A stretch of DNA of 64,000 bases from Convolutriloba macropyga (lineage: Eukaryota): positions 13,268,001-13,332,000 of the forward strand of contig NC_134475.1 in NCBI RefSeq assembly GCF_964194025.1, in the 5' to 3' direction. Shown here piece by piece: positions 373 to 62,538 of this stretch; positions within the stretch are counted from its first letter, which is position 1; every line of letters begins with the position of its first letter. Under the pieces are notes generated by a model. The model saw only the letters and a list, made by a program, of their open reading frames with translations, searched no databases and was not told the origin of the DNA. Both the position numbers and the translations under genes were made by a program.

Positions 373-1300
373 AATAGCCGCACAGCGATATCTGGGGCTA
401 TTATTGGCCTTTTCTTGGTTTTTTTTACAATTCAAAGAATTTTTACAATTCAAAGAATTTGAATTGCATTGGGGCGCTGTCTTTTTTTTAAGATCTGTTC
501 ACACATTTTCATGATTTTTGAAGTCAAATTGGAGTAGTGATTTTGGTCACGCCGAAACAGGAAGTGGAGCGAAAAAGCGAGTGGTTTTGCGGCGTGAAAT
601 TTTTTCGCTCTAAATTTAAAGTAGAGTGAGAAAACAGTGTTTGAACAAAAATTCGCTTTCTCGCTAGAGGTTTTTTGTTCACATGCGGCTATTTCACTTT
701 GATTTTTACAGTTTGTTTCGATTTTTTGGATCGGATTTTTTTCTAAATGGTTTTTCCAATCCATTCATAGTCCGTTCTAGGTCTAGTTTTTTGTCTAGTC
801 AATGAAAATTGTTTGAACTGTACGTCAGGACTTGCCTGCAATGTTTTTTATTTCGTCGGTAAGATTTTTGTTTCGACCATATGTCACAACCACTTCAAAT
901 CTGCTTTTTGTTCATTCGTTCATGCAATTTCATTTGAAGTTCCTGCGTGATGTAATTTTTCGCTCTTGATGGAGCGAGTTTTTTGTTCATTCGCGTGATT
1001 TAATTTTTGGTCACACTTGACTTACCTCACTCTCAAAAATGACTTCCTCATTTTGAAATCAACTTTTATTTACTTTAATTCAGAGATGAGGTCAAATGGG
1101 TGTGTAGTACTCTAAATGAAGGTTATTTGAGAGCAGCTAATAGAGGCAGCAAAAACGTGTACAGATTTTTAATCAAAATAGAACATATCAGCCATCAATG
1201 AAAACACGAATTTTTTTGGTCTGTCTTTTTTACTGTTTTTTTGAGACTGCAGATCTACAAAGCTATTGCGGCTATTTTCTTGCAATCTGCCAGCTATGTT
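373..1300 (+). mobile_element. Helentron/DINE-like non-autonomous composite A[B]; B = ~426-845
   Basis: A 5' aatagccgc...gggctatt, A 3' gcggctatt + hairpin + ctatgtt; B 5' tacaattcaaa (partly duplicated), B 3' tttgaactgta-caggacttgcctg-caatgtt. Confidence 0.75.
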
Positions 1301-1306
1301 TTTTTG

Positions 1307-2400
1307 ATAGCCGCGTCAGCAATTCCAGGCGGCTATTATAGCTCTCCTAATTTTTTTACAATTCAAATTTGAATTGTATTGGTGCGCTGTCTTTTTTTAA
1401 GATCTCTTCACACAATTTCATGATTTTCATGATGAAATTGGAGTAAAGATTTTGGTCACGCCGAAACAGGAAATGCAGCGAAAAAGCGAGTTGTTTTGCG
1501 GCGTGAAATTTTGCTTTAATTTTAAAGTTGAGTGAGAAAACGGTGTTTGAACAAAAACTCGCTTTCTCGCTAGTGGTTTTTTTGTTCACATGCGGCAATT
1601 TCACTTTTATTTTTACTGTTTTTTTCGATTTTTTGGATCGGATTTTTTTTCTGAATAGTTTTCCCAATCCAATCTTAGTTCATTCTTGGTCTAGTTTTTT
1701 GTTTTAACCAAATTTCCATTTCTCGCTGGTGGTTTTTTGTTCACATACGGCATTTTGACTTTGATTTTTTTTTCAATTTTATTGATCTGATTTTTTTTAA
1801 ATGGTTTTCCCAGTTCACACATAGACCATTTTAGGTAAAATTTTTGCTGAGTCATTGAAAATTTTTTGAATTGTACGTCAGGACTTGTCCTGCTATGTTT
1901 TTTTACTTCGTCTAACAGATTTTTGTTTCGTCTTACCCTAACTTCTTGGAATTGACTTTTTCAATGACTTCAGTGACTTCTGCTTTGCAGTTAAAATTTG
2001 TATTCGTAACGTTATTGCTGCTTTTAGGTCAATTGCATGACTTACCTCACTCAAAAAATGACTTCTGAACTCACTTATGGAACTTTTTTTATGAACATTT
2101 ACTAATTAAAGGTCAATAGTGTGCATCTAAGTGCCAAACTTATATGCACTAATTGCTGAGTAAGAGTCTTGAGTTTTAATATCGAATATTAATTTTGAAA
2201 AAGCGCCATTAGGACTTTTTCCTTGTAAAGCAAATGTGTCTCATAAAAATGACAGTCTGAATCTTTCTGAAGCTGTCGATCTGTCAATCTTATTTTCAAA
2301 AGTGGTCGATCTGTCAATCTTATTTCTTTAGTTGTTTCAGTTCATGGTAGGCCACAAGCGTCTATCGTGGCTATTTTCCGGCAATCTGCCGGCTATGTTT
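1307..2400 (+). mobile_element. Composite A''[B]; B = ~1357-1899
   Basis: Same terminus architecture with a different A body (shared with 16648-17187); 3' ccggcaatctgccgg-ctatgtt. Confidence 0.72.
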
Positions 2401-2498
2401 CTTTCTTTTTGTAATCCACTTAAATTGAAATAATCAGAATTAATCAGAGTTCCAAGGGCGTCAACGTAACAAAAGTTTTGAGATGATTTGTACTATAG

Positions 2499-2709
2499 GG
2501 TTCTTTCACAAATTCCAAAGATGTTTGCCTCGAACCTGGAATCCGATCCTATTCTGGGTCCAGTAATGCAGGCAGGTCTGGACGCTCTCAAGTCTGATGG
2601 GAGAGCTGGAAAACTGTTTATATTCCATACAGCAATGCCAACTAGGGAGGCCCCTGGAAAATTAAAGCCCCGGGATCAACAGAGACTCCTGGGCACTGAC
2701 AAGGAAAAG
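2499..2709 (+). CDS. SEC24C: SEC24C/D COPII coat subunit, internal exon (trunk/vWA domain); gene starts upstream of window
   Basis: VLSQIPKMF...AGKLFIFHTAMPTREAPGKLKPRD...TDKEK matches the SEC24C/D trunk; tag acceptor ending 2498, gt donor 2710. Confidence 0.92.
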
Positions 2710-2943
2710 GTAGCACTTGATGACATCTTTAGCTGTGGTTATGATCAGAACTGGTTTCGTATCTTAATTTCAGAACAGGGAATTCGCAAATAAAAGCATT
2801 TCTTCATCTGCATTAATGTGTAATTTAGTAAGAGATAAAATTGATCAAGACAGTGCAATGAATAAAGCAATTTCAATTAATAAAATGTTAAAAATTACGC
2901 TTTGGCAATATGTTTTTATTTTTTTTTGATGTTTTCTGTTCAG

Positions 2944-3114
2944 ACCATTTTGAAGCCGCAGTCTGACTTCTACTCGAAACTGGGTGTGGAGTGTGTGAGG
3001 GCAGGCTGCTCTGTAGAACTGTTCATGTTCCCATTTGCCCATGTGGATGTAGCCACTCTAGGAGAGGTGCCTAAACTGACGGGAGGCCAACTTCATCTCT
3101 ACAACAATTTTCAA
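2944..3114 (+). CDS. SEC24C: SEC24C/D exon
   Basis: TILKPQ...ECVRAGCSVELFMFP...VDVATLG...LTGGQLHLYNNFQ; cag/gtcagt boundaries, phase 0. Confidence 0.93.
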
Positions 3115-3773
3115 GTCAGTTCCACCTTCAAGTGGTTGTAACTGCAACCGCTGCATGACATTTTACCAAATGCTAAATTACCCAATGTGCCAAAATAGCC
3201 AGTGCAATAATACACATTTGATCAATTAATTCCTTACAAATAAGCAGTTGGTGAAAAGAGTTACCAAGTCGATATTTGGTGATTTCAGCTGTGAATTCAA
3301 ACTACCTGAGTAGCTCTTGCGTTAGAAATGCTGTTGAAGTATTACCGGCCGGATAGCATAGAATGCTAATGAATATTATTTGTCAACATAGTGGAAGTGT
3401 TAACTTGATCTTTAAATCCCTTTCGCTGAAAAGCATACAAAAATGAATAAAATACCATGAATACGCAAGGTCCGAGGGTTAAAAATTAATTTGAAACATA
3501 GATTAATAGAATTTTTGACAGAGCAGCATCAGAAAGTTCCAGTGAACTGAAAAATGGACCATTTATGTCTTACTTTTACATATAAACCCCAAAAGCCTAA
3601 CTTGAATCCTTATATTTTTTCAAGTGATAATAAGTGATTTGAATGATATGAATTAACATGTAAATGTTTAACATTTGGTTAGTGTCGTGAAATTCACATG
3701 CTTGAATTGAAAAAAAATCTAGCAAATAGAATGGCATTTGAAAACTGTATCCAAATGTCTTAAATGTTTTCAG

Positions 3774-4016
3774 CCAAGCCTTGACGGTGACATGTTGATG
3801 TCGGATGTTGCGAGTTGTGTGCAGAAGGAGTATGGATTCGATGCTATGATCAGAGTCAGAACCAGTGCTGGACTTCGGCCCTGTGATTTCCATGGTAATT
3901 TCTACATGGAGACCGCACAGGACGTTGAGTTGGGAGCCATGGATCCAGACAAAACTATCCTGGTCGAGTTGAAGCATGACGACAAGTTGGACGAAAATGC
4001 CGGAGCACATGTTCAG
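3774..4016 (+). CDS. SEC24C: SEC24C/D exon (beta-sandwich)
   Basis: GFDAMIRVRTSAGLRPCDFHGNFYM...VELKHDDKL...HVQ; cag/gt boundaries. Confidence 0.93.
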
Positions 4017-4067
4017 GTAGAATGAATGCGATCAGATGTGTTTGATATTGCAAAGTTTTGTCTTATT

Positions 4068-5770
4068 AATAGCCGCACAGCGATAGCTGGGGCTATTATT
4101 GGCCTTCTCTTGGTTTTTTACAATTCAAAGAATTTGAATTGTATTGGGGCGCTGTCTTTTTTTTACGACTCGAAGAGGAGTATTGGAGAAGTCCTTTTTT
4201 TAATCAATTTTATTGGAGTGATTTTTGAAGCGGGAAATGAAACGCGTGAAAAAATTTGGAGTGATTTTGGGGCTGAACAAAAGTTAAGAGCGGAGCGAAA
4301 AGAGAGTGGTTTTTGTTCATACCGCTGTTTTTGCGAGAGCGAGAAATCGATGTGTGAAAAAATTTTCTCAGCGAGCGAAATTTTTTGTTCACGTGCGGCT
4401 TTTAAAAGCAGTTTTTTGCAACATTTGATGGTTATGAGGTTTGATTATAATATTGTATTAGTTTTACGCTTGTTTTGATAAAAATTGAAGGTTTCAAGTA
4501 GTTAATTCTGAGTTTAATGCTAATTTGGAGGGTTTTGATCAGTTTTGCTGATTTGTAGACGAAATTTAATGATTTTTTGCCTGTTTTTTCGTATTAATGC
4601 TTTAAATGGGATTTGAATAGAAGCTTGTTACTTAAGGAATATTCAGCTACCAAATGACTACAGTTTTATTGGTGTAAATCATTCTTTTCTTCGGAAAATT
4701 GACAGAAAAATCGAGAAATTTTAAACCATTTTTCTTATTTTTTTGCTGTTTTTCGTCTTAGTCTTAGACAAGTTTCTTAGCCTATATTGACTTGCCCATA
4801 TTGTTTGGCGAGCTTTTCATTGCCCTAATTGGAAAGGAATTTTACTCGGCTTTATCTTTCCTTGTACTATTAAAAAAACCTCATTAAGTTTTTCTAGTTT
4901 TTTATTCAATTTGTTTTTGAATGCCGTTTCTACTCTTCCTTAAATTTTTATGGCGTTTGTGGAGGTTCAGGGTTCACAATAGTTGTTCTAGGTGTGTAGT
5001 CAAAAGTATGGGCAATTTTCCTCTTCGAGTCGTTTCGGGATTTCTTCCGGCTATGTTTTTTTAAGATCTGTTCATACATTTTCATGATTTTTGAAGTCAA
5101 ATTGGAGTAGTGATTTTGGTCACGCCGAAACAGGAAGTGGAGCGAAAAAGCGAGTGGTTTTGTGGCGTGAAATTTTTTCGCTCTAAATTGAAAGTAGAGT
5201 GAGAAAACGGTGTTTGAACAAAAATTCGCTTTCTTGCTAGTGGTTTTTTGTTCATATGCGGCAATTTCACTTTGATTTTTACTGTTTTTCGAATTTTTGG
5301 ATCAGATTTTTTTTCTTAATGATTTTCCCAAGCCATTCATAATCCGTTCTAGGTCTAGTTTTCTGTTTAGTCAATGAAATTTCTTTGAATTGTACGTCAG
5401 GTCTTGTCCTGCTATGTTTTTTTTATTTCGTCGTCGCGATTTTTGTTACGACCATATGACGTCACAACCACTTCAAATCTGCTTTTTGTTCATTCGTTCA
5501 TGCAATTTCATCTGAAGTGCGTGCGTGACGTCATTTTTTGTTCTTAGTGGAGCGAGTTTTTCCGTTCATTCGCGTGATTAAATTTTTGGTCACACTTGAC
5601 TTACCTCACTCAAAAATGACTTCCTCACTTTGAAATTGACTTTTATTTACTTTATTTAATTCAAAGATTTGACCCTATATGGGTGTGTGTCACTCTAAAT
5701 GACGGTTATTAGAGATTAGCTAATAGAGGCAGCTATTGCGGCTATTTTCTGGCGATCTGCCAGCTATGTT
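4068..5770 (+). mobile_element. Composite A[B[C]]; B = ~4119-5418, C = ~4164-5057
   Basis: Three stacked 5' modules (aatagccgc / tacaattcaaa / tacgactcgaag), and three 3' modules in reverse order (cttcgagtcg / tttgaattgta / gcggctatt), each + hairpin + ctatgtt. Confidence 0.78.
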
Positions 5771-5985
5771 CATTTTTTTCCGTTTGCGATAGTGGTTTCC
5801 TTTCAAACGAAGCTTTTTCGGACTATTCATATTCTAAACAACAAAAGTAGTTTTTGCATTGCGTAACGCAAGATTCTTCAATTTCTTTGACGATGTCTGA
5901 TTTTTGAGCAACTATCTGCCTCAAAAATGTGTTTCTGTCTCTTTTAATGGCACAATAAAATAGCAGCAATACTTGTTTTGTTTAG

Positions 5986-6243
5986 GTTGCTCTACTGTAC
6001 ACAAATTTCAACGGAGAACGTCGACTGAGAATACACAATATGTCATTCAGTTGCTGTACTCAATTGAGTGACATGTACAAAGCTGTTGAGACAGATGTAC
6101 TTGTGAATTGGTTGGCAAAGGAGGCATCCAGGGCTCTGCTCAAAGACAATCCTAAGCAGGTCAAAGAGAGGATTGTGGACATGTGTGCGAACAGTCTGGC
6201 ATGTTATAGGAAGAATTGTGCTCAGCCTTCGTCACCTGGACAG
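5986..6243 (+). CDS. SEC24C: SEC24C/D exon
   Basis: VALLYTNFNGERRLRIHN...LACYRKNCAQPSSPGQ; tag/gt boundaries. Confidence 0.94.
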
Positions 6244-8094: not shown

Positions 8095-11000
8095 TGAAGT
8101 TTGAAGTATTTTTCTATTACCATTATCCATAAAATTGCTATGAAACTAAGTTTTGAGCGAGAAGTGTTAGTCGTATTGTCTATTTTTCCGCTTTTATAGT
8201 AAATATCAGTCGAAATTGAGCACAATGATCAACCGCGCTCATGTCGTGACATGTTTTAGGGGTCCTTAATGCAACCTAGCATAAATGCGTTTTGAGAAGC
8301 GCTTTACCATCATATTTAAGCTTCTCATAAAAACCTTAACTACTTTTAAACCTTCTATTCGTGTAAATGATTTTCTTGTTAATAGGCGCCCTCATCGTCT
8401 CAGCCGGCTATTATAGCGCTCCTGTTTTTGTTTACTTCGTCGAACATTTTTTCGCTTTACCATTTTGCCGCTTTTTCGACATTTTGCGTGAAATCTTTTT
8501 GACTTCTCTAGGCTAGTTTCTCTCTTCTCTCATTCTTCTAAAAGTGAATTTGAACATCATTTGCTCAGCAAAGCAATTCAAAATGAACAGAGTCAGTATA
8601 AAAAATTGAAGTCAGAAATAGAAACGGGATAAACCCATAAAGCCCAATTTTAGATGCCCGCTATTTGAACGTCGTTCCTATAAGTCTTAGTTACCATTTC
8701 TTATGCTTATTAATAGCCGCCCTCATCTTCTCAGCCGGCTATTATAGCGCTCCTATTTTTTTACAATTCAAAGAATTTGAATTGTATTGGTGCGCTGTTT
8801 TTTTTTTTTAAGATGTTCACACGTTTTTCAATGACTTTGATCTTTCGAAACGGGATAAACAGGTAAAGCCCAGCGGGCATTAAGTTTCATTAGAGGCCCA
8901 AAGTGGGCTTTAGTAGTTCTTCAAGTGCGTATAGTGGTGCAGCTGCTGGGATGGCTTTAAATAAAGGTTAAAAGGTCATTTTTAGGAGTTTTTCGTCTCA
9001 AAATGGTGCAATTTTTCGTGTTTTTTGTGATTTTTTTTGAGATTTTTGTTTGATTAGTCTAAGGTTGAAGTTTTTAAAAGCTGATGAAGGCCTTTTGCGA
9101 GACAAAATTGCTTGTTATGACCATTTTATGGGCTATATGTCGTGGTACTACAAACACAAACACACAAAATGATACTCATTTTTGCAATTTTTTTCAGGTT
9201 TTTTGAAAATTTTTGTCATTTTTTGAGTTTTTAGCCCTAGGTGTCACGAAACCTCATCTAGGGTTTGATAAAGGGTTGGATGATAGGTTACTGCACAGTT
9301 TCTAGTGGTAATGGAACGGTTTTCAACTTTTTGACATCATGAATTTTAGCATTTTTTGACAAAAGTTGCAAATTTTTCATGTTTTTTGACATATTTATTG
9401 TCATCCTTCAAGTTGTTTGAGTCCCAGGGGCAAGAAACCCGTATTAGGGGTTGGATAATAAGTTACTGAAAAATTTTTAGTTGCCATGGAATAAGTTTCA
9501 ACTTTTGAATATCACAAGTTTTAGCAATTTTTTTAAACAAATTTGCATTTTTTTCAGGTTTTTGAAAATGTTCATCATTTTGTCAGTTTTTCGAGTTTCA
9601 GGGACCAGGCAATCTCCGTTGAGGTTTGTTAATAGGGAACTGCATAGTTTCTAGCAACAATTGAATGCTTGTTAACTTTTTAATATCTCGAATTTTAGCA
9701 TTTTTTTGATAAGATCTGCAATTTTTTTAATGTTTCCTAAAGTTTTTGTCAGTTTTTGATATTCGTCGATTCTCAAGTGCAAGAAAACCTATTCCGCGTT
9801 TTGATAAAAAAAGTTACTGCATGGTTTTTAGTTTCATTGGATTTGTTTTCAACAATTTAACCTTTCGTCTTTTAGAACTTGTTTGATAGAATTTGCAATT
9901 TTTTTTCAAGTTTTTTTGTTTTAAATATTTGTATTTTATTTATTTTTTCTTGCCTCAAATGCCAGGTAAACGCATCCAGGGTTTGAAAATATTTTATTAA
10001 ATAGTTGCTAGGGGCAATTGAATGGCTTGAATGAAGTTTGAAGTATTTTTCTATTACCATTATCCATAAAATTGCTATGAAACTAAGTTTTGAGCGAGAA
10101 GTGTTAGTCGTATTGTCTATTTTTCCGCTTTTATAGTAAATATCAGTCGAAATTGAGCACAATGATCAACCGCGCTCATGTCGTGACATGTTTTAGGGGT
10201 TCTTAATGCAACCTAGCATAAATGCGTTTTGAGAAGCGCTTTACCATCATATTTAAGCTTCTCATAAAAACCTTAACTACTTTTAAACCTTCTATTCGTG
10301 TAAATGATTTTCTTGTTAATAGCCGCCCTCATCGTCTCAGCCGGCTATTATAGCGCTCCTATTTTTGTTTACTTCGTCGAACATTTTTTCGCTTTACCAT
10401 TTTGCCGCTTTTTCGACATTTTGCGTGAAATCTTTTTGACTTCTCTAGGCTAGTTTCTCTCTTCTCTCATTCTTCTAAAAGTGAATTTGAACATCATTTG
10501 CTCAGCAAAGCAATTCAAAATGAACAGAGTCAGTATAAAAAATTGAAGTCAGAAATAGGAACGGGATAAACCCATAAAGCCCAATTTTAGATGCCCGCTA
10601 TTTGAACGTCGTTCCTATAAGTCTTAGTTACCATTTCTTATGCTTATTAATAGCCGCCCTCATCTTCTCAGCCGGCTATTATAGCGCTCCTATTTTTTTT
10701 ACAATTCAAAGAATTTGAATTGTATTGGTGCGCTGTTTTTTTTTTTTTTAAGATGTTCACACGTTTTTCAATGACTTTGATCTTTCGAAACGGGATAAAC
10801 AGGTAAAGCCCAGCGGGCATTAAGTTTCATTAGAGGCCCAAAGTGGGCTTTAGTAGTTCTTCAAGTGCGTATAGTGGTGCAGCTGCTGGGATGGCTTTAA
10901 ATAAAGGTTAAAAGGTCATTTTTAGGAGTTTTTCGTCTCAAAATGGTGCAATTTTTCGTGTTTTTTGTGATTTTTTTTGAGATTTTTGTTTGATTAGTCT

Positions 11001-11968
11001 AAGGTTGAAGTTTTTAAAAGCTGATGAAGGCCTTTTGCGAGACAAAATTGCTTGTTATGACCATTTTATGGGCTATATGTCGTGGTACTACAAACACAAA
11101 CACACAAAATGATACTCATTTTTGCAATTTTTTTCAGGTTTTTTGAAAATTTTTGTCATTTTTTGAGTTTTTAGCCCTAGGTGTCACGAAACCTCATCTA
11201 GGGTTTGATAAAGGGTTGGATGATAGGTTACTGCACAGTTTCTAGTGGTAATGGAACGGTTTTCAACTTTTTGACATCATGAATTTTAGCATTTTTTGAC
11301 AAAAGTTGCAAATTTTTCATGTTTTTTGACATATTTATTGTCATCCTTCAAGTTGTTTGAGTCCCAGGGGCAAGAAACCCGTATTAGGGGTTGGATAATA
11401 AGTTTCTGAAAAATTTTTAGTTGCCATGGAATAAGTTTCAACTTTTGAATATCACAAGTTTTAGCAATTTTTTTAAACAAATTTGCATTTTTTTCAGGTT
11501 TTTGAAAATGTTCATCATTTTGTCAGTTTTTCGAGTTTCAGGGACCAGGCAATCTCCGTTGAGGTTTGTTAATAGGGAACTGCATAGTTTCTAGCAACAA
11601 TTGAATGCTTGTTAACTTTTTAATATCTCGAATTTTAGCATTTTTTTGATAAGATCTGCAATTTTTTTAATGTTTCCTAAAGTTTTTGTCAGTTTTTGAT
11701 ATTCGTCGATTCTCAAGTGCAAGAAAACCTATTCCGCGTTTTGATTAAAAAAGTTACTGCATGGTTTTTAGTTTCATTGGATTTGTTTTCAACAATTTAA
11801 CCTTTCGTCTTTTAGAACTTGTTTGATAGAATTTGCAATTTTTTTTCAAGTTTTTTTGTTTTAAATATTTGTATTTTATTTATTTTTTCTCGCCTCAAAT
11901 GCCAGGTAAACGCATCCAGGGTTTGAAAATATTTTATTAAATAGTTGCTAGGGGCAATTGAATGGCTT
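8095..11968 (+). repeat. Near-perfect direct tandem duplication, ~1.94-kb unit (8095-10028 and 10032-11968)
   Basis: Both copies start tgaagtttgaagtatttttctattacc and end ggggcaattgaatggctt; only scattered substitutions and homopolymer-length differences. Confidence 0.92.
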
Positions 11969-13210
11969 TCAACATTTTAATAGAAGGAATTTCTATTTTG
12001 AAGTTTGAAATTCTTAAAATTTATTGCCTATCGATCTATGAGCCACTGATTTTTTAATTGTTCGAATTGGGTTACTGGATAGCCTCTAGAGACACAGAAA
12101 TGATTCTGAAGATATTTATATCACAATTTTCAGCAACATTTTCTTATAACTTGCAATTGATTTCTTTTTTTATCTTAAATTTTTTGGTCATTTTCAAGAT
12201 AATCGATCTTCAAGGGCCAATGAGTATTTTTCAGGTATTGCAGATATAATACTGGACTGATTTCAGAAACAAAAATTGGTTTTGAACATATTTTTGTAAT
12301 AGGTGTTTAAAGGGAAAAAGTTTTGCCCTAGGTTTAAAAGCTTCAAGAGTTTTAGCAATGAGTTTGTTTTTGTTTAGTTTTGATTCTTTTAGTTACTCAA
12401 TTCTTTTGTGATTTTTGTGTTCTGGCTGGCATTGTTCAATTGATCTGCTGATCAGGTAGAGTGCGTCCAAGTTTTTCATTCAATTCTTTGAATTGTATTT
12501 CAGGACTTGTCCTGCTATGTTTTTTACTTCGTCGAATAAAGAAATGTTTCGCTTTACCTCATTTTGCCGCCTTTTCAACATTTTGCGTGAAATATTTTTG
12601 ACTTCTCTAGGCTAGTTTCTCTCTTCTCTCATTCTGCTAAAAGTGAATTTGAACATCAGTTGCTCAGCAAATCAATTCAAAATGAAAAGAGTCAGTGTAA
12701 AAAATTGAAGTCAGAAATAGAAACGGGATAAACCCATAAAGCCCAATTTTAGATGACCGCTATTTGAACGTCGTTCCTATAAGTTTTATTTACCATCTCT
12801 AATGCTTATTGTTATTGATAGTAGCCCCTGTAGCCTCTCTATAAGAAACAGAAGTATGTTCAACTACGAAATGCCATCAAAATAAATCGGACTTAAATAA
12901 AATGTTTTTGTACAAAAATCTTTTTTTTTTCAATATCTTCTGTTATTTCAATCCCAATCATGCTTATTGGAATCAACGGCGGCTATTTTCCGGCAATCTG
13001 CCGGGTATGTTTGGTATTGATAGTAGCCACTGTAGCCTCTCTCTAAGAAACAGAAGTATGTTCAACTACGAAATGCCATCAAAATAAATCAGACTTAAAA
13101 ATGTTTTCGTACAAAAATGTTTTTTTTTTCAATATCTTCTATTCTTTCAATCACAATCATGCTTATTGGAATCAATGGCGGCTATTTTCCGGCAATCTGC
13201 CGGGTATGTT
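10318..13210 (+). mobile_element. A' element containing a second A'[B'] (10649-13011; B' = ~10700-12521)
   Basis: Two aatagccgccctcatc 5' ends and two ggcggctattttccggcaatctgccgggtatgtt 3' ends; the outer body resumes at 13012. Confidence 0.75.
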
Positions 13211-13969: not shown

Positions 13970-16504
13970 AATAGCCGCGTTAAAAATCTTTTAATAGCTG
14001 GGGCTATTATTGGCCTTCTCTTGGTTTTTTACAATTCAAAGAATTTGAATTGTATTGGGGCGCTGTCTTGTTTTACGACTCGAAGAGGAGTATTGGAGAA
14101 GTCCTTTTTTTTTAATCAATTTTATTGGAGTGATTTTTAAAGCGGGAAATGAAACGCGTGAAAAAATTTGGAGTGGTTTTTGTGCTGAACAAAATTGAAG
14201 AGTGGAGCGAAAAGAGAGTGGTTTTTGTTCATACCGCTGTTTTTGAGAAAGCGATAAATTGATGTGTGAAAAAATTTTCTCTAAGCGAGCGAAATTTTTT
14301 TGTTCACATGCGGCTTTTTAAAACCGTTTTTTTGTTATTTTTTTTTGGTTTAGAGGTGTGATTATGATATTGTGGGATGCTTAGGGTTGTTTTAATAGTG
14401 GTTCGCAAGTTTTTGGTCATTAATAAGATTTTTATACCATTTTGCTGGTTTTTCAGCTATTTTGCTGAGTTTTAGACGAATTTTAGCAATTTTTTGCGTT
14501 TTGTTTTGTTATAATGCTTTGTAATGGCTTTCAATAGACGCATGTTAGTAACTGAGTTTTTAGATACCAAGTGATTACATTCCCTTAGGTTGGAAACGAT
14601 TTTTTTGTTTAGAAAAATGACAATAAACTGAAAAATTTCGAATTATTTTTCTTAATTTTTTGCTGTTTTTCGTTTTTTTTTTAAACTTCGAAAAATTTTT
14701 CAGCCTATTCGACTTTCCTATTGTTTTCGAAGCCTTCCAGTACTAATTCGCTCCAATAAACGTTTTTTGGGTCTATGTGCTCCCGTGAGATTAAAAAAAA
14801 GCTCAATTTTTTCTATGATTTTTTTTCAATTTTTTTTAAATGCCCTTTGTGTTCTTCAATTTTTTATAGCATTTGGGGATGCCTATAGTCCAAATTAGTT
14901 GTCCTTGATGCGTGTTGATGATTTTGATTTTAGTTTTGAATCATTTTGTTAAAGATAATTGAGTAACTTTTATGAAGAGTTCCGCAAATTTTTTTTTGGA
15001 ATTTTTGCTGAGTTCTTCTGATTGTCTGCTTTTTGCTAGTTTCTAGTGGTCTAGCTTTCGATAGGAGCTTTTCTAGAGGTTTTGTTGAAATATATTTAGT
15101 GCACTTTTCAATGACAAATATCACTAACTTTTCTTAAACACTAACTTTTTTTCTATTTTTTTTCGTTCTTCGTTTTTACTCATATAAATAAACAATGATT
15201 TGGATTGGTGGACACTTGACCAGATGTAGTATTAAAAGTTTTTTGAAATAATGATTTGATTCCAGCATAATGGTATTTGATTCATTATTTGTGGCCAATT
15301 TTTTTGTTTTTTTTACAGAAAATAATTTGGTTTTGTTTTTCATTTCCTTTCTTTTACCTTCGTTTATTCTACTTGAAATTTGTGTTTGGTTTTTGTCTCA
15401 AATAGCAGTGATTCAACAAAATTAAACTAAACCTATTTCACGGGTTTTCGCCAAAAGTTGTTTTTAAACTTGCAACTCAATTTAAAATTTTTATCACGTG
15501 CTTTATCGTCTTTTCTGGTCAGTTATTTTTTCATAGTTTTTTCTTTTTTTTTGTTTTAAAGTGACAAGTGTTATTCAGTAGGATAAGCATTATGTTAGCT
15601 ATTGTGGTCAATGAGTAGAATAAGTTTTATGTTTGTTAGGGGCGTTCGTTTTTTCCTTCGAGTCGCTTCCGGAATTCTTCCGGCTATGTTTTTTTTTAAG
15701 ATCTGTTCACACATTTTCATGATTTTTGAAGTCAAATTGGAGTAGTGATTTTGGTCACGCCGAAACAGGAAGTGGAGCGAAAAAGCGAGTGGTTTTGCGG
15801 CGTGAAATTTTTTCGATCTAAATTTAAAGTAGAGTGAGAAAACGGGGTTTGAGCAAAAATTCGCTTTCTCGCTAGTGGTTTTTTGTTCACATGCGGCAAT
15901 TTCACTTTGATTTTTACGGTTTTTTCGATTTTTTGGATCGGATTTTTTTCTAAATGGTTTTCTCAATCTATTCATAGTCCGTTCTTGGTCTAGTTTTCTG
16001 TTTAGTCAATGAAAATTCTTTGAATTGCACGTCAGGACTTGTCCTGCTATGTTTTTTATTTCGTCATCATGATTTTTGTTACGACCATATGACGTCACAG
16101 CCACTTTTTGTTCATTCGTTCATGCAATTTCAACTGAATTGCATGTGTGACGTCATTTTTCGCTCTTAGTGGAGCGAGTTATTTGTTCATGCGCCTGATT
16201 AAATTTTTGGTCACACTTGACTTACCTCACTCTCAAAAGTGACTTCCTCAATTTGAAATTGACTTTTATTTACTTTAATTGAAAGTGATAAGGTCAAATG
16301 TGTGTGTGTGTCACTCTAAATGAAGGTTATTTGAGATCAGCTAATAAAGGCAGCAATAACATATACAGAGTTTTAATCAAAATATAACAGATCAGCCTTC
16401 AATGAAAAGACGAAATTTTTTTAGTCTGTCTTTTTTACTGTTTTTTTAGACTGTCGATCTACGAATCTATTGCGGCTATTTTCTGGCAATCTGCCAGCTA
16501 TGTT
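13970..16504 (+). mobile_element. Composite A[B[C]]; B = ~14030-16053, C = ~14074-15690
   Basis: Same nested terminus order as 4068-5770, longer C body. Confidence 0.78.
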
Positions 16505-16647
16505 CTGTTTTTGCTTTCGAACAATCCATCCCGTATTCGTCCCATTTCCAGCCAAACTGTTTGATCATATTTCCAAATTTTGACAATTTTTTTCAAACAT
16601 TGTGGAACATTTTTTATCAGTTGGGAAAATTTGAAGTACGTCTTTAT

Positions 16648-17187
16648 AATAGCCGCGAAGCGATAACGGCTATTATTGGGGACATCGTGTTTTTTTTTAA
16701 TTCGTCGTCTCCATCGATGATTCTTGCGACCGTTGAATTTATCAATTTCAGTGACTTCTACCTTTGCAGTTAAAGTTTGTGTACGTGACGTCATTTGTTC
16801 TGCTTTTAGGTCAATTGCGTGACTTACCTCACTAAAAAATGCCTTCTGAACGCACTTAATGAACTTCAAATTTTATGAACATTTACTAGTTAAAGATCAA
16901 TAGTAAGCATCTAAATAGTGCCAAACGTATATGCCCTAATTCTTGAGTATTAGAGTCTCCAGTTTTTGATTTTAGATTTTAATTCTGAAAAAGCTCTATT
17001 AGGGCTTTTTCCTTATAGAGCTTATGTGTCTCATAAAAATGACAGTCCGAATCTAACTCAAAAAGTCTGGTGGTCTATTAAAGGGCTGGTGGTCAATCTG
17101 TCTATCTTATTTCGTCATTTGGTTCAATTCCATGGAAGGCCATAAGCGTCTATCGCCGCTATTTTACGGAAATCTGCGGGCTATGTT
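16648..17187 (+). mobile_element. Solo A'' element
   Basis: aatagccgcg...cggctatt 5' module, body homologous to ~1900-2400, degenerate 3' hairpin + ctatgtt. Confidence 0.7.
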
Positions 17188-21615: not shown

Positions 21616-22145
21616 ATAGCTGCGAAGCTGTAAGCTGAGCGTAGCTATATTGCGGTGCTCTTGTTTTTTTTTGTTTCGTCGTCTGACGCTCTTTTTTTTT
21701 GTTTTACATTTGTTCACACAGCAAAGCTGAAAAAGTCAAATTTTCTGAATGACTTCTTCTCACTAACGGCGTTTGCGCGTGACGTCATTTCTCACTCGCT
21801 TTAGCGAAATTTTTAGGTTATTTGCGTGATTAGATTTTGATCATACGTGACTTACCTCACTCAATAAAATGACTTTTGCACTTTAAAACTTAGGTTTAAT
21901 TTGAAGGTTTAAACCTTTGTTTAAGGTTAAAGGAACTCATATGTGCAGTAAAGGTCCCTAATAAGAGGCTTCTGTGGAATGATTTTTAACAAGCTTTATT
22001 GATTTATTGCTGAATGTTTTTTAGCCTAGTTTTTTGAGCGGCGTCGATTTTTTTTTCAATTTAGATCTGTATCTGTTTCTATCTCTATTATATGGCACGC
22101 AGGTCTATTCTTTCGCAGCTATTCCGGCAATCTGCCGGCTATGTT
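21616..22145 (+). mobile_element. Solo A-related element with variant subterminal IRs
   Basis: 5' atagctgcgaa pairs with 3' ttcgcagctat, followed by ccggcaatctgccgg-ctatgtt; carries the gacttacctcac core. Confidence 0.7.
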
Positions 22146-23286: not shown

Positions 23287-23783
23287 AATAGCCGCACAGC
23301 GATAGCTGGGGCTATTATTGGCCTTCTCTTGGTTTTTTTCATTTCGTCGTCATGATTTTTGTTATGACCATATGACGTCACAACCACTTTTTGTTCATTC
23401 GTTCATGCAATTTCAACTGAATTGCATGTGTGACGTCATTTTTCGCTCTTAGTGGAGCGAGTTTTTTTGTTCATGCTTGTGACTAAATTTTTGGTCACAC
23501 TTGACTTACCTCACTCTCAAAAATGACTTCCTCACTTTGAAATTGACTTTTATTTACTTTAATTCAAAGAGATAAGGTCAAATGGGTGTGTCCTTCTAAA
23601 TGAAGGTTATTTGAGATCAGCTAATAGAGGCAGCAATAACTTGTACAGATTTTAATAAAAATATAACAGATCAGCCTTCAATGAAAAGACGAATTTTTTT
23701 GGTCGGTCTTTTTTACTGTTTTTTTAAGACTGCCGATCTACAAATCTATTGCGGCTATTTTCTGGCAATCTGCCAGCTATGTT
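23287..23783 (+). mobile_element. Solo A element (~500 bp, empty nesting site)
   Basis: A 5' module runs via a T-run directly into the A body (atttcgtcgtc...), complete 3' module. Confidence 0.8.
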
Positions 23784-43608: not shown

Positions 43609-46507
43609 AATAGCCGCACAGCGATAGCTGGGTCTATTATTGGCCTTCTCTTGGTTTTTTTACGACTCGTTTTGACCTAAAAGCGAACGAGTAAAATTGT
43701 CATGTGAACTAATTTCTTCTGAGCAAGAGGTTTTTGATCATGCGCTTCAATCAGTGAATGACTTTTCGTCTTTGAAAAGTGTTTTTGAGAGAATGGTGCT
43801 TATAGATAACTCCTTTTTGACGGTTTTTTCATCCATTTGATTCAATTTCTTTCCTTGCATATTTTTGTATTAATAGTTTTTGACCAATGCTGCATTAATA
43901 TCTAGCTCGCTGAAATTGATACCACAAAGTTTTTGAACGCCTAATGCGTTTTAAGTGCAAAATAGGCACATATCTTTTTTATTTTATTAATAGCCGCACA
44001 GCGATGGCTGGGGCTATTATTGGCCTTCTCTTGGTTTTTTATTTCGTCGTCGCGATTTTTGTTACGACCATATGACGTCACAACCACTTCAAATCTGCTT
44101 TTTGTTCATTCGTTTATGCAATTTCAACTGAAGTGCCTGTGTGACGTTGTTTTTTGCTCTTAGTGGAGCGAGTTTTTTTGTTCATTCGCGTGATTAAATT
44201 TTTGGTCACACTTGACTTACCTCACTATCAAAAATGACTTCCTCGCTTTGAAATTGACTGTTGTTTACTTTAATTCAAAGAGATAATGTCAAATGGGTGT
44301 GTGTGTCACTCTAAATGAAGTTTATTTGAGAGCAGCTAATAGAGGCAGCAAAAACTTATACAGATTTTTAATCGAAATATAACATATCAGTCTTCATTGA
44401 AAAGACGAATTTTTTTGTCTGTCCTTTTTACTGTTTTTTGAGACTGCAGATCTACGAAGCTACTATTTTCTGGCAATCTGCCAGCTATGTTTTTTTTCAT
44501 TTTTTCTTTATTTTTGTATCTTTGAAAGGACATTTTTCTAGAGAACAAGTGTATCTGGCAACGACCTTTTGACAGCTTAATCATTAGCCACTTAGCTATA
44601 GCTTACCTCATTTTTGTTTTGTAGGATTTTAAATATACTAATCCGATTTTTGTCCACTTTTTTGTTTTCAGTTAGTATAAAGTCTTTTTGTGCACAGCGG
44701 GGAATTTTTATTTTGTGTTTTGAATAATTAGTATGGTTCTTGGCTTTATCTTAGTAACTCATTGAGAAATTGTTTTCAGAAACGCAGTTTTAACGATATA
44801 TTTTTTTTACAAAATTTACGAAAAATTTATACAACTATTTTTGCAAAATTGTTTAGTGTTCTAATTATTGAAACTGTTGCAACTTGTTTCGAATAGACAA
44901 TAAGTTGGGCATGTAATCTTCCGAGCCATGAATGCTGTATAAAATTGTCTGTTTTTCTACTTAATTTTTCTATCTGATTTTTCGAAGTAGTCTTTTTGTT
45001 TCTTTTTTCTTTTTTGGCATTGTTTTTGTATTATATAAACTCTAGCCCGTATCATTCTAGCTTTCACCTAGAATGTTTTTTCTCAATAATTTGCCTTTCG
45101 TTGAAAAGTTTTGTTTTCACATTTGATAGATTTCTCAAAATTTTCTTGGTTTGCAATAGTTTTCATATATAATGTACTTCTTAGGCTTTGCTAGGTTTAG
45201 TTTCAGAAACTGTTACTGATACCTAGTTTTTGTGAATTTTTTGGGGCCAGATTTCTAATAAACTATTTTTCTTTATATTTGAGTGTTACTCTGTTCCTTT
45301 TGTTTTCAAGATTCTTTTTATTTGGCAGTATTTTGATTTCATTTTCTCTGCTATCTCCAACAAGAAAAAAAATCTATCTTAATCTTCTTTTCTAATTTTT
45401 AAGTGCTCTGAAGTCCTCTTAAAAATGTTTAGTGTGTTCTTAAGTCCTCTTAATTTCAGTTGAGGTAAGCAACTTTTGTGGAAAGCAATTTTCGATGAAG
45501 GCAATTTTATTTCTAAGACTGAAATATGCTTACCGACTGTCTTTTAGGTCGCAGAGTGAATTGTGTAGCGCCGATTTTTTTTGAATAATATGTTTAATTC
45601 TTTCGTGAGTTTTTAGCCGGTCCGTTTTTTTAGCTTATCAATTTTTTTGCCGTCTGAGAATTTTGGCCAATTTTCAACACCACCAGATATTTTTAGTAAA
45701 TTGAAAGTTTGCGTTATGAAGATATCTCAGTGAATGCTTCTGTCAACCTTATGTCTTTAGATTTAAATATTTGATTCTTTTCTTATGATATCGAATGATT
45801 GACTTGTTTTGGTGTTAGCTAGTTTCAATGATGTCAATCGTCAAATCTTTATCGTTATGAGGTATAACATTTTTACCGATTTTTTTTTCATCGAAGCTGA
45901 TGAGGTAAGGAATAACCGTTTTAAGACAAATAATGATAATGGTAATTTAAATTTTAAGATAATTAATGGTTTCGTCTTTAGTTATGGTTTTGCTGGTGAA
46001 GTTGCGACGCTTCGAGTCGCTTCCGGAAGTCTTCCTTTTTTATTTCGGAATTCTTCCGGCTATGTTTTTTATTTCGTCTTCAAGAGGTTTTTACGACCAG
46101 AAACTGCTTTTTGCTCATTTGTTCATGCAATTTCAATTGAATTGCGTGCGTGACGTCATTTTTCACTCTTTGTGGAGCAAGATTTTTTTTCTTTCGCGTG
46201 ATGAAGTTTTTGGTCACACGTGACTTACCTACCTCACTCTCAAAAATGACTTCCTGACTCTAAAGTTGACTGTTCTTTTCTTTAATTCAAAGAGATAAGG
46301 TCAAGTGCGTGTGTGTGTGTGTGTGTGTGTGTGCCACTCGAAGGTTATTTGAGAGCATCTATTAGAAGCATCAATAAGTTTGACAGATTCCTAATCAAAA
46401 TGTAACATCTGAGGATTTAATAAACTTTTTGTGTCTGTTATTATATTTTTGAGAGTGCAGATCTACGAAGCTATTCGGCTATTTTCTGGCAGTCTGCTTG
46501 CTATGTT
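43609..46507 (+). mobile_element. Composite A[C]; C = ~43661-46066, itself interrupted by a solo A (43989-44491); (GT)n at ~46309-46333
   Basis: A 5' module followed directly by tacgactcg; C 3' cttcgagtcgcttccggaa...ccggctatgtt; A body and 3' module. Confidence 0.75.
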
Positions 46508-49250: not shown

Positions 49251-50996
49251 AATAGCCGCCCTCATCTTCTCAGCCGGCTATTATAGCGCTCCTAAATTTT
49301 TTTTACAATCCAAGAATTGGATTGTATTGGTGCTCTGTCTTTTCTTTTATTTTTGTAAGATGTTTTCACACTTTTCATGACTTTGAGCTTTCAGAACAAG
49401 ATAAACAGGTAAAGCTCAGCGGTCATCAACGTTCATTAGAGGCCCTTAGACGCGCTTAATAGTCTTTCAATTGCTTAGAGTGGCGAAGCTACTGGAAAGG
49501 CCGTAATTCAAGGTTAAAAGGTCATTTTTAGGAGTTTTCGAGCCCAAAATGTTCCAATTTTTTTGTGTTTGTTCGCCATTTTTCGAATTTTTTGTTGGAC
49601 CAGTCTAAAATTGAGGTTTGTAAACGTTGATAAAGGTCTTTTTCAAGGCATAATTATTTTCTATGATCGTTTTAGGAGCTATATGTTTTGGTACTCCAAA
49701 TATAAACACGCAATTTTATACTAATTTTTACAATTTAAAAAGTTTTAATAAGTTTTTTTTGTCATTTTTTGAGCTTTTTCAGACCTAGGTTTCAAGAAAC
49801 CTGCTTCAGTGTTTGATAATAGGTTACTGCATAGTTTCTAGTGTTAATGGAATGGCTTTTGAACATTTTAACATCACGAGTTTTTGCAATTTTTTTGGAA
49901 GTTTTTGTCATTTTTTAGGTTTCTCAATCATCAAAGGCCACGGAATTTCCTCTACGGTTCAATACTAGGTTACTGCATATTTTCTAGTGGCAATGAATAA
50001 GTAACTGCACATTTCTTTAGAGGTAATGTGTTGGTTATCAATTTTTTAATAACATGAGTTTTTCTAATATTTTGTAATTGTTTTTTCTAAATTTTTTTGC
50101 CATTTCTGAGTTTAACTATCTCTGCTGGCCCACAAAACTTTTTCGGTCTTGCAGTTGGGTTATATGGCAGAACACCACGGACCAAAAATGGTTATGAACA
50201 TTTTATTGCCGCAAAATTTAGAAACTTTCTTTAAATTTTGCACTTGTCAGTTTTTACGTTCGTCAAATTTCTCGAGTTTGTCTACCTTTAGTGGAGTCTC
50301 TTTCATGTCTTGTGCGTGAGTAAATGAGTATATTGAATTGTATCATATTTGGCCTTCATGATAAAAGCTTCAAGAGTTATCCGTGATTATTTTCTTATTT
50401 ATTTTGTTTGATTATTTTAATTTCTCAACTTTGAGATTGTCTTTTTGCTGGGATTGTTCAATTGATCTGCTGGTCAGGTTCTTTTTAGTTCTCAGTATTT
50501 CATTCAATTCTTTGGATTGTATTTCAGGACTTTTCCTGCTATGTCTTTTTACTTTGTTGAACTTTTTTTCTCTTTTCCCATTTTGCCGCTTTTTCGACAT
50601 TTTGCGTGAAATCTTTCGACTATTCTAAGCTAGTTTCACTCTTTTGTCTTTCTGCTAAAAGTTATTTTGAACATCAGTTGCTCAGCAAAGCAATTCAAAA
50701 TGAACAGAGTCAGTATAAAAAATTGTCAGAAATAGAAACGGGATAAAGCCCATTTTTAGATGCCCGATACTTGAACTTTGTTCTCATAAGTTTTAGTTAC
50801 TATCTATAATGCTTATTGGTATTGATACTAGACCATGTAGCCTCTCACTGTTAAATTACGAAATGGCATCAAAATAAATTGCACTTAAAAATGTTTTTAT
50901 ACAAAAATCAATTTTTGTTGAATTTTTCTTTTCTTTCAATCCCAATAGAGTTATGGGAATCAACGGCGGCTATTTCCCGGCAATCTTTTGGGTATT
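49251..50996 (+). mobile_element. Composite A'[B']; B' = ~49304-50544
   Basis: Homologous to 10649-13011; B termini carry the covarying tacaatccaa/ttggattgta variant. Confidence 0.75.
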
Positions 50997-59657: not shown

Positions 59658-60037
59658 AATTGCTCTCAAACAAAGTTTGTAGCAACTATATTAGTCCTGT
59701 CGGTCTTTTTTACGCGATTTTTCGCTTGACTGATTTTTCGTCTGACGCTTTTGACTTTTCGTCCTCAAAAAAGGTAATCAGGTAGCGGCCGGCGAGCATT
59801 AAGTGCTCTTAGAGCCTTTCAGCTCTGTTTAAGCTCAAACTGTTTTGGAGACTTATACTTATGGTGTGAAGGGTGGTTCTTAGAGGTTAAAGACACCCTC
59901 ACTGTTGACCCCCCCTCTATTGACCCCACCCCCCCCCGCGCTGTTCCCCCCCCCCAACACCCCACTGTTGCCCCCACCTCATCAGCTCTCGGTGCATCCC
60001 CACTCCCTTTCTAGCTACTGACGAACAACCGCTCGCT
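59658..60037 (+). mobile_element. Family E element, 3'-truncated
   Basis: 5' aattgctctcaaac, conserved E core, C-rich tract, stops at aaccgctcgc. Confidence 0.6.
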
Positions 60038-60039
60038 AT

Positions 60040-61330
60040 AAACACGCAAATTTATACTAATTTGGACAATTTTTTTCTAGCTTTATGAAAACGTTTGACA
60101 TTTTCTATTTTTTTAGCCCTATGTGCCAAGGAACGTCCTCTGGGCTATTATAATAGGTGACTGCATTGTTTCTAGTGGTAATGGAATGGTTTCAACTTTT
60201 TAACATCGCGAATTTTTGCATGTTTTGACTAATTGTGCAATTTTTTTTTTACAAATTTGACTTTTTTTCCTTATTTAGGTCATTCAAGACTCAGGGACCA
60301 GAAACCTTCTAAGGGGTTTGATAATAAGTTACTTTCAAATTTTTATTGGCCATGGAATAATTTTTAAACTTGTTAATTTTAAACTTTATGTCACAAATTT
60401 TAGCAATTTTTTGACAAAACTTTTTTCCAATTTTTTTTTGAAAAATTTGGTCGTTATTTAGATTTTTTTCAGCCTCAAGAGCCAAGAAAATTCCTCTAGG
60501 GTTTGAAAATAGGTTACAGTGTAATTTTTAGATGTAATGGATTGGCCTGCAAGATTTTAACGTCAGGAGTTTTATCTTTTTTTGACAACTTTTGCCGTTT
60601 TTCCTCTTTTTAACATTTGTAGTCATTCAGGTTTTTTGGGACTCAAGGGTCACAAAACCTCCATTAGGGTTTGATTATAGTTTGCGGGAATTTTTTGGTC
60701 TTGGAATGATTTTCAATCTTTTATTATCACAAGATTTAGCAAATTTTTTAATGAAACTTGCAATTTTTTAAGTTTTTCGAATTTTTTTTTGTCATTTTTT
60801 AGGTTTTTCTAGCCTCAAGAGCCACGGAATTTCCTCTAGGTTTGATAATATATTACTGCAGAGTTTATAGATGTAATGGAATATTTGTCAAGATGTCAAT
60901 ATCACGAATTTAAGCACTTTTTTAAAATATTCGTGATTTTTTTATGTTTTTGAATTTTTCCGGCACCAGGGTCCCTGGGACCTTCTCCAAGATTTGATAA
61001 TAAGCTTCTGGATACTTTTTAGAGTTATTGGAATGGTGTTCATTGTTTTTTATGACTCCAGTTCTGGTAATTTTTGGATGAAATTTTCAAGTTTTCGGAT
61101 AATTTTTATTTTGTTCCAAATGTATGGATCTTATGAGCCAGTGAAACTATTTCAGGCTTGAAACTGGATATATTCTCGAGACATAGAAGGGGTTCTAAAG
61201 ATATTAATATCATGAATTTTTGCCAGAGTTTTACGACCATTTCTGGCCAACGAAACTTTTTAAGTCGTGGCTATGGGTTCCTTTCGAGACAAAAAATGAT
61301 TTTGAACTTTTTTTTTAAATTTCGCCTGTT
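60040..61330 (+). repeat. Diverged ~155-180-bp tandem array (B' internal satellite)
   Basis: Units recur near 60115, 60290, 60472, 60642, 60812, 60965 and 61130 (…agggtttgataataggttactgca…atggaat…); same unit at ~9230-10028, ~11170-12250 and ~49780-50250. Confidence 0.75.
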
Positions 61331-62040
61331 TCAGCTTTTTTTCTATGTGATTCATTTAATAACGAGGCTAGACAACAAGAAGTTGCAGAGTCATCATGAA
61401 AAATATTTCGATCTCTTTCTCTGTGTCGGTTGGGGTTTCTTTACTTCTCTTTACCGTTCACATTTTATCTCTCTATCTCTCTCTCTTTTTGTTGATGCCG
61501 CTCTTCAGCTGCTGTTATGTGGCGTAATGTCATCATCTCTGATTCTCATTAACTATGAGTTATAGTAAAAAAAACTTGTATAAACGTTTTTATAAATGAC
61601 TGAACAGGCACTTTTTTGGAAATTTTTGTTAATTGCTCGCAAAAGCAGTTTGCAGCAAATATATTAATATTAATACGCTTCGTATACCTCTGACTCCGAT
61701 GTTACTCTTTATAGCCACCATTATAATTGAGGTTTATCTGTGTTTTATAGAGTCGGTTAGTCTGAGAGAATTAGGAAAGCCTACTTCGCGCGCAGAAATA
61801 AATAGCCGTAACTCTTCATACCTTGAGGCTGTAAAAAGAGCCCACCTTGGGTCTGCCTTACAATAATAGACTACTACAATATTAGGCTACAATAATGCTT
61901 ATTGTAGCCTAATATGGAATGAAACTATTCGTAACAATTAATATATACCACTATAAAGATGATAACATTCGATCAGATTGATTTCTTTTATATCTGATTA
62001 TATTTGTACTAGACTCGTCGGCAGCTACCGTAATGTTTTT

Positions 62041-62538
62041 AATAGCCGCACAGCGATAGCTGGTGCTATTATTGGCCTTCTCTTGGTTTTTTTTTATTTC
62101 GTCGTTATGATTTTTTTTACGACCATATGACGTTACAGCCACTTTTTGTTCATTCGTTCATGCAATTTCAACTGAATTGCATGTGTGACGTCATTTTTCG
62201 CTCTTAGTGGAGCGAGTTTTTTTGTTCATGCACGTGATTAAATTTTTGGTCACACTTGACTTACCTCACTCTCAAAAATGATTTCCTCAGTTTGAAATTG
62301 ACTTTTATTTACTTTAATTCAAAGAGATAAGGTCAAATGGGTGTGTGTTACTCTAAATGAAGGATATTTGAGATCAGCTAATAGAGGCAGCAATAACTTA
62401 TACAGGTTTTTGATCAAAATATAACAGATCAGCCTTCAATGAAAGGACGAATTTTTTGGTCTGTCTTTTTACTGTTTTTTTAGACTGCCGATCTACGAAT
62501 CTATTGCGGCTATTTTCTGGCAATCTGCCAGGTATGTT
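62041..62538 (+). mobile_element. Solo A element
   Basis: Highly similar to 23287-23783, both termini intact. Confidence 0.8.

Follow-up and report, generated by a model that had tools for sequence, protein, structure and literature searches.

In a 64,000-nt stretch of the Convolutriloba macropyga genome (contig NC_134475.1, hereafter the window), two kinds of short non-coding mobile elements, which we call B and C, lie almost exclusively within the 5′ ends of other elements of the same general type, where they occupy one defined run of T residues ~50 nt inside the host. Throughout, the 5′ hairpin module of an element is called its head and the 3′ end its tail, and A[B] denotes a guest B inserted within a host A. 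The head T-run is a strongly preferred landing site for B and C and, to a lesser degree, for all the elements considered here, and B and C landed in heads many separate times, across host families. As a whole explanation we consider it likely that A, B and C are elements of the HINE type (Helentron-associated non-autonomous elements), that B and C repeatedly insert in the head T-runs of their hosts, and that hitch-hiking of guests with their hosts adds further copies. A sequence-only reading of the window had proposed a strictly ordered A[B[C]] nesting in which B and C repeatedly occupy the 5′ modules of resident elements; the repeated occupation was borne out genome-wide and in many host families, while the strict order was not. 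Its idea of a hyperparasite or safe-harbor system would be a functional interpretation of this pattern.

Exact-pattern searches over the whole 1.18-Gb assembly, to which all genome-wide numbers refer, gave complete counts of B heads (28-mer, 7670 copies), C heads (22-mer, 4374 copies) and A3[B] junctions (1593), and in every one of these genome-wide searches the reversed patterns used as a control returned 0 matches. The upstream context of the guests was sampled with a weak, context-independent anchor placed 71 nt upstream of the head, taking the first 100 copies on contig C1 (C1, C2, C4, C8, C10 and C807 are contig labels, the window coming from C8, and L-numbers indicate sampled genomic loci). 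About 85–88 of the 100 B copies directly followed the head T-run of A1, A2, A3, A4, A5 or B, about 4 stood directly after a 3′ end (hairpin-CTATGTTTT and then B) and about 8 lay in other T-runs. For C, about 93–95 of the 100 copies followed a head T-run, the hosts being B (~40%), A1 to A4, C variants and a further family, F. B and C are therefore not mostly free-standing in random T-runs, and the claim that every B and C sits in the 5′ T-run of a host holds as a genome-wide preference of ~85–95%, the remaining copies lying directly behind 3′ ends or in ordinary T-runs. B and C guests were found in no fewer than seven host families, always in the orientation of the host, and the deepest stacks comprise four heads (e.g., C1:19511423-19511546). 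Seen from the host side, among 100 A1 heads on C1 the guest is B in about 46, C in 13 and A in 1, whereas about 38 have no guest, so that about 60 are occupied. The motif ATTGG had also been tried as a marker of the host; it is present 6–40 nt upstream of just 31% of B heads, which first suggested free-standing B, and this reading was dropped because the 71-nt context sample revealed that the common hosts A3, A4 and A5 do not have ATTGG.

As a control we used the first 80 A1 heads on C1, picked by position alone. Five to six of these 80 copies (~7%) lay in a head T-run and about 8–9 directly after the tail of another element, mostly of family F (L003, L024, L030, L040, L041, L080), which identifies the T-run after a 3′ end as a second hot spot; the remaining copies were found in ordinary TT or T-runs, including varied positions inside B, C and A bodies. 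For A1, heads and tails thus act as mild hot spots, whereas B and C use them almost exclusively.

The most direct measure of the preference comes from comparing positions within one and the same host. The A1 body holds eight further runs of at least five T; across the genome, B was counted 1521 times directly after the head run (TCTCTTGG plus T-run) and 12 times after a T7 body run of like length (GGAGCGAG plus T-run), and four of these 12 cases belong to one tandem array. In the sequence sample (the window plus 80 loci), about one in 90 B or C heads lay in a host body. These numbers bear on the possibility that the nests simply reflect layering in time, A having spread first, then B, then C, each into the T-rich bodies of earlier elements and with no special site. 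Such layering would agree with the strongly T-rich strand of the window (727 runs of at least five T on the + strand versus 220 on the − strand), with the A1 copies found at many positions within B, C and A bodies, and with the fact that B[C] is some tens of times commoner than C[B]. It predicts no fixed site, however, yet the ratio of head to body within A1 is 127:1 and body insertions are as rare as stated; moreover, young A1 copies (1–2% from the consensus) hold B copies of more diverged lineages. We consider layering in time, taken as the whole explanation, very improbable. The order A, then B, then C is a strong tendency and no fixed rule, since B[B], C[C], C[B], A1[A1], A3[A1], A4[A1] and B[A1] nests were also seen.

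On the basis of their terminal layout, A, B and C are probably non-autonomous rolling-circle transposons of the Helitron2/Helentron group, or HINEs, in agreement with the sequence-only reading. The window carries about 25 such non-coding elements, all on the + strand. Their heads consist of a hairpin, the first arm of which is the 5′ sub-terminal repeat, followed by ATTGG or a variant of it, a spacer of 8–11 nt and the T-run; their tails consist of the complementary sub-terminal repeat, a GC hairpin and CTATGTT. The terminal repeats are AATAGCCGC (5′) and GCGGCTATT (3′) in A, ACAATTCAAA and TTTGAATTGT in B, and ACGACTCGAAG and CTTCGAGTCG(T) in C, and each pair is found at the matching ends of each nest. 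The tail stem-loops have stems of 5–6 bp (CTGGCAatcTGCCAG, CAGGActtgTCCTG, CCGGAAttcTTCCGG), with CTATGTT after each. Computed folding indicated that the head and tail hairpins fold as single-stranded DNA; head hairpins are formed in A1 to A4 and B, and the head hairpin of C is weak (4 bp, z = 0). What had been taken as one terminus family, A, does share a common arm, AATAGCCGC or its variant TATAGCTGC, and comprises at least five families (A1 to A5) that differ from one another in loop, spacer and body. Family F has the head hairpin AATTGCTCTC..AGCAATT and the tail GAGAGCAAT..CCGACGTTAGTCGG TTATGTTT, and its heads host C and A1. B occurs in two forms, a short one of ~400 bp and a long one of ~560 bp with an internal duplication of body positions ~150–306, for which CACAGCTCATTCT is diagnostic. 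For the solo A1 of 497 bp in the window, used as the reference for an empty host, over 1900 candidate copies were counted genome-wide, the top 40 by score being 94–96% identical.

The insertion into the head T-run is precise. The empty A1 site TTGG-T7-CATTTCGTCG at 23330 can be compared with the matching filled sites at 4113/5419 and 14024/16054: the sole difference between empty and filled sites is the guest plus ~5 T, there is no target duplication, and past the guest's own tail the host body restarts exactly where the solo copy continues. The head T-run averages 8.4 T in solo A1, versus 6.9 T before and 6.8 T after a guest. The 5′ flank of the A1 copies themselves has at least two T in 77 of 80 cases and at least one T in 78 of 80. 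B and C are mobile units with ends of their own.

The nests of the window were read base by base, and the terminus motifs and nests described by the sequence-only reading were all located at the places given there, on the + strand only. Its listed elements were likewise recovered, and four were added to them: a solo A3 (10318), a solo A4 (21616), an A3[B] (8712) and an A5-like remnant (25380). Two elements described as A[C], at 31006 and 43609, do have C within A, the second one being an A1[C[A1]] with a further A1, at 43989, inside its C body. A generic scan of the window for heads (TT, a hairpin and a T-run within 6–24 nt) returned 34 heads on the + strand and 1 on the − strand. The elements of the window are the following, all on the + strand:

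373–1300, + strand: A1[B] composite; A1 head 373–425 (AATAGCCGC..GGCTATT hairpin, ATTGG, spacer, T-run), B from 426 to ~846 with a doubled head (426 and 444) and a decayed tail, A1 body 847–1300 ending with GCGGCTATT, hairpin and CTATGTT
1306–2399, + strand: A3-like[B2] composite; A3-like head 1306–1356 (GATAGCCGC..GGCTATT ATAGCTCTCCTA T-run), B2 1357–1899, host body 1900–2399
4068–5770, + strand: three-level nest A1[B[C]]; A1 head 4068–4118 (AATAGCCGC..GGCTATT hairpin, ATTGG, CCTTCTCTTGG, T-run), B 4119–5418 (head ACAATTCAAAgaaTTTGAATTGT, ATTGG, GGCGCTGTC, T-run), C 4165–5057 (head ACGACTCGAAGAGGAGT, ATTGG, AGAAGTCC, T-run), A1 body 5419–5770; the tails end in the order C (5057), B (5418), A1 (5770)
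8712–13210 (end approximate), + strand: cluster of A3 type; A3[B] with A3 head at 8712 and B head at 8762, solo A3 at 10318, A3[B] with A3 head at 10649, B head at 10700 and B tail at 12515–12521; A-type 3′ sub-terminal repeats at 12979 and 13178
13970–16504, + strand: three-level nest A1[B[C]]; B 14030–16053, C 14075–15690, A1 body 16054–16504
16646–17187, + strand: solo A2; head AATAGCCGCGAAGCGATAACGGCTATT ATTGG GGACATCGTG T-run
21616–22145, + strand: solo A4; head ATAGCTGCG..AGCTAT ATTGCGGTGCTCTTG T-run, tail GCAGCTATT, hairpin, CTATGTT
23287–23783, + strand: solo A1, the reference empty host (497 bp)
25380–25460, + strand: A5-like head remnant (..GGCTATTATTTAGGCGCTCTCC T-run) carrying a B-variant head, ACAACTCAATGAACTTGAATTGT ATTGG
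31006–32003 (end approximate), + strand: old, decayed A[C]-like element; C-like head at 31056, C-like tail at 31573–31579, A-type hairpin at 31982
38338–41117, + strand: older A1[B[C]]; B head at 38388, C head at 38434, C tail at 40132–40138 (CTGTGTT), A tail at 41111–41117
43609–46507, + strand: A1[C[A1]]; A1 head at 43609, truncated C head, C tail at 46060–46066, after which the A1 body resumes up to a decayed A tail at 46501–46507
43989–44491, + strand: solo A1 inside the C body of the preceding nest
49251–50990 (end approximate), + strand: A3[B3] composite; B3 head ACAATCCAAGAATTGGATTGT ATTGG at 49305, A-type 3′ repeat at 50966
62041–62544, + strand: solo A1

The same arrangement could arise if a single ancestral composite had been amplified, a scenario that the sequence-only reading had judged insufficient. 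In order to compare host and guest histories we built a maximum-likelihood tree of 64 A1 bodies, labeled as solo, B-short, B-long, B[C] or C, and a tree of B, in which copies hosted by A1 dominate and only five come from outside A1 heads. On the host tree the solo state needs 21 changes versus 21.5 when the labels are shuffled, so that occupancy is unclustered, and supported A1 sisters with unlike states occur (L024 solo with L026 B, support 93; L012 B[C] with L062 solo, support 95). In 13 young A1[B] copies, pairwise distances average 0.040 for the A part and 0.070 for the B part, and the matrices of the two parts show no correlation (Mantel r 0.03, p 0.42). Host and guest trees are not congruent: pairs that are sisters on the B tree are not sisters on the A tree. 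The short and long forms of B, which form separate clades on the B tree (L006, L011, L016, L030, L066, L072 and L075 versus L002, L033 and L035), are both found in A1, and both also in A3, where they number 384 and 240 copies, and the few B copies that are hosted by A2 or A3 or adjacent to a tail fall among the A1-hosted ones. One amplified composite is insufficient because the tree, the Mantel test and the B forms all show host and guest histories to be uncoupled; together, the tree, the distances and the B forms favor a common pool of B elements from which guests were inserted repeatedly. The divergence of the A part and of the B part from their consensus sequences was also considered as an age test and set aside, since B has several source lineages; its Pearson correlation was driven by one old copy and the Spearman correlation was not significant.

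An uncoupling of the two trees and a scattered occupancy would be produced likewise by ectopic gene conversion or recombination, if the insert of one A[B] had been copied by means of flanking homology, and without transposition, into other A copies. The homology on the 5′ side, however, amounts to just ~50 nt, the same guests are present in hosts with unrelated heads and bodies (A1, A3, A4, B, C, F), and the guests have complete transposon ends and are also found free-standing and directly after 3′ ends. We give this explanation hardly any credence.

More has to be said about hitch-hiking as the only cause, in which B and C would insert at random T-runs, a few insertions would hit heads by chance, and the resulting composites would then be amplified by the host's ends. 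A guest in the head leaves both host ends intact, so that composites could be moved by those ends, and composites of this kind are very abundant, as the ~60% occupancy of A1 heads indicates. Most short-B composites share one 6-T junction, and tandem and segmental duplicates of composites exist. In addition, the free-standing B and C copies, 5–10% of thousands, could exceed the few dozen founding events in heads that this scenario needs. For the last reason we dropped counts of host-guest classes as a proof against hitch-hiking, replacing them by the test of position within the host, the tree and the Mantel test. Several findings speak against hitch-hiking alone. A guest in the body would be carried equally well, and hitch-hiking alone leaves the 127:1 position bias unexplained; more than 20 host-guest combinations were seen, and in all of them the guest is in the head; solo and occupied copies are scattered over the host tree, host and guest distances do not correlate, and the guests show more diversity than the young hosts that carry them; and A1 and A3 each contain both forms of B. 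We therefore regard hitch-hiking on its own as improbable. As a contribution next to repeated insertion, however, composite hitch-hiking probably adds to the copy numbers, given that the trees are star-like, the B sample is mostly hosted by A1 and the short-B junctions are mostly alike.

How the head T-run comes to be chosen can be approached from the structure of the head. Its second hairpin arm is identical in sequence to the 3′ sub-terminal repeat, and the T-run follows this arm after ~16 nt in the head and the repeat after ~22 nt at the true 3′ end. On this basis we propose that a transposase bound to a resident head might take the head T-run as a pseudo-terminus, cleave there and join the incoming circle at that point; the true 3′ end would then be a second, weaker hot spot (~4% of B and 10% of A1 copies). 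We hold this step to be quite possible, though short of probable. As a variant, guests might join the host head while it is single-stranded in the course of the host's own rolling-circle transposition, which would also account for the 60% occupancy of A1; we see this variant as rather unlikely. Transposition that occasionally starts at an outer 5′ end and stops at an inner 3′ end should yield doubled heads. In these, the first ~18 nt of B and a T-run precede a complete B head, with a single tail, as at 426–466 in the window, and the 100 sampled B heads include five such cases (~5%); a doubled C head, with ~20 nt of C and a T-run before a complete C head and again a single tail, is found in L053 (180–229).

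Several points weigh against repeated head insertion, or against the mechanism proposed for it. The A1 tree is star-like, with three of 60 inner branches strongly supported, and its power to detect a composite lineage is accordingly limited. Among seven short-B composites, six have an identical 6-T junction, as some amplification of an A1[B-short] composite would produce. No orthologous host copy was shown to be polymorphic for the presence of a guest: in the four public runs compared with window positions 200–6100, the contigs are short and end at repeat edges, and the many apparent joints are other genomic copies, so that these runs speak neither for nor against polymorphism. The evidence for the pseudo-terminus step consists of sequence resemblance, and neither mechanism accounts for the head specificity of B and C versus its absence in A1, for which separate transposase lineages acting on A-type and on B/C-type ends are a possibility. 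Finally, since the C head hairpin is weak, the preference would not be set by the guest's own hairpin.

The element type as such is already known. HINE/DINE-1 elements are non-autonomous partners of Helentron/Helitron2 (HLE2) elements (Thomas et al., 2014, PMC4067079; oyster Cg_HINE, PMC7492417; HELIANO, PMC11417382), and the elements described here resemble them in having a 5′ sub-terminal repeat folded into a hairpin with a neighboring inverted repeat, a complementary 3′ repeat with a stem-loop, insertion at TT or in T-rich DNA, where the element contributes a few terminal T and the target is not duplicated, and a non-coding nature with high copy number, several unrelated families per genome and derived tandem arrays. 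They differ from DINE-1 and Cg_HINE in having a T-run in the place of the microsatellite that follows the 5′ inverted repeat and, above all, in their target: the published elements show a preference for T-rich DNA only, whereas here 85–95% of B and C are found at one T-run within the heads of other HINEs, across families. The nearest precedent found is a single Helitron2-like family of a fungus, in which 5′ ends are stacked as the result of self-insertion. This family, FoHeli1 of Fusarium oxysporum, has “multiple 5′ termini” (Chellapan et al., 2016, PMC5148889; PMC13342296), in one orientation and within the first 31–85 nt, ascribed to a copy inserting near the 5′ end of another (PMC5148889). 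Elements of this type have the first <200 nt of the 5′ end repeated ahead of a single body and 3′ end. Our doubled B and C heads, a minority class, resemble its product of transposition from an outer 5′ to an inner 3′ end (PMC5148889). In FoHeli1, however, a single autonomous family inserts into itself, as seen in a handful of copies that usually have only one 3′ end, whereas the nests described here are mostly cross-family, number thousands of non-coding copies, keep every 3′ end in reverse order and use one defined T-run. Another specific target is that of Paramecium Helitrons, which insert into telomeric repeats (PMC13085455). In a full-text literature search, no publication was found that describes cross-family targeting of other elements' 5′ modules at genome scale. 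The target preference seen here is well supported and unusually sharp. In their way of working, the insertions are also like those of other single-strand (HUH) transposons and of elements that seek hairpins, in that the target resembles an own end recognized by the transposase and the target strand fixes the orientation; the HUH transposons IS608 and IS91 target sites resembling their own end. No homology or common family is claimed by this comparison, and for the elements described here such recognition is a putative step.

Little is understood of how Helitron-like transposases select their targets, apart from “AT” or “TT in T-rich DNA”. C. macropyga offers thousands of natural integrations at one defined site, beside a hairpin that is presumably bound by the transposase, with matched controls inside the same hosts, in which other T-runs are used ~100 times less, so that target choice becomes directly testable. 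The results also matter for annotation, as stacked heads and nests confuse Helitron finders, and they bear on the origin of composite and satellite-like arrays from HINEs and on whether non-autonomous elements can specialize in living inside other non-autonomous elements. More tentatively, and with more doubt than belief, we suggest that the 5′ module may be a landing pad recognized by the transposase and that B and C may be obligate parasites of parasites, joining the host head, possibly while it is single-stranded, and then traveling along with it. If true, a defined target specified by sequence and structure would for the first time be known for a eukaryotic rolling-circle transposase, and DNA transposons would provide a natural multi-level hyperparasite system.

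Candidates for the autonomous partners are present in the genome, which has 90 matches to Helitron_like_N (Rep domain), some of them in open frames of ~2500 aa. In one coding copy DUF6570, a marker of the HLE2 clade (PMC11417382), stands next to Helitron_like_N, as in a Rep gene of HLE2 type. Helentrons in the strict sense are marked by an AP-endonuclease domain at the C-terminus of the Rep-helicase. The six Rep-match pieces L081–L086, which are 3.4-kb internal pieces only, have no element ends inside. Rep matches in long open frames (1322–2515 aa), which mark candidate intact autonomous elements, are located at G000:C10:43249862-43643187, C4:51229020-51244671, C2:35749492 and C807:6497; the C10 interval of 0.4 Mb holds a cluster of five.

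Tandem arrays derived from composites were observed as well. In L029 (G000:C1:8799242-8802640, positions ~960–3399) a satellite-like array repeats every ~463 bp, each unit joining an A-variant head to a B head and the initial 193 nt of the B body, like the arrays described for oyster HINEs.

As to the surroundings of the elements, the nest at 4068–5770 is intronic, lying between exons 3774–4014 and 5984–6100 of a spliced contig from public run X1. The genes of the window (Sec24-like exons, PRCC and TRAPPC13) are on the + strand and co-oriented with all ~25 heads; for TRAPPC13, no named relative exceeds 45% identity. The strands of 100 A1 copies on C1 cluster (39 runs versus 51 expected, z = −2.4). 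The strand bias may be due to co-orientation with transcription, to co-orientation with the direction of replication, or to self-reinforcement through imported T-runs. A scan of the window against Rfam found no RNA family. The sole sizeable feature seen on the − strand of the window consists of open frames of 257 and 115 aa at 34087–35278; the 257-aa frame has no match in Pfam, and the two frames possibly represent a decayed retroelement.

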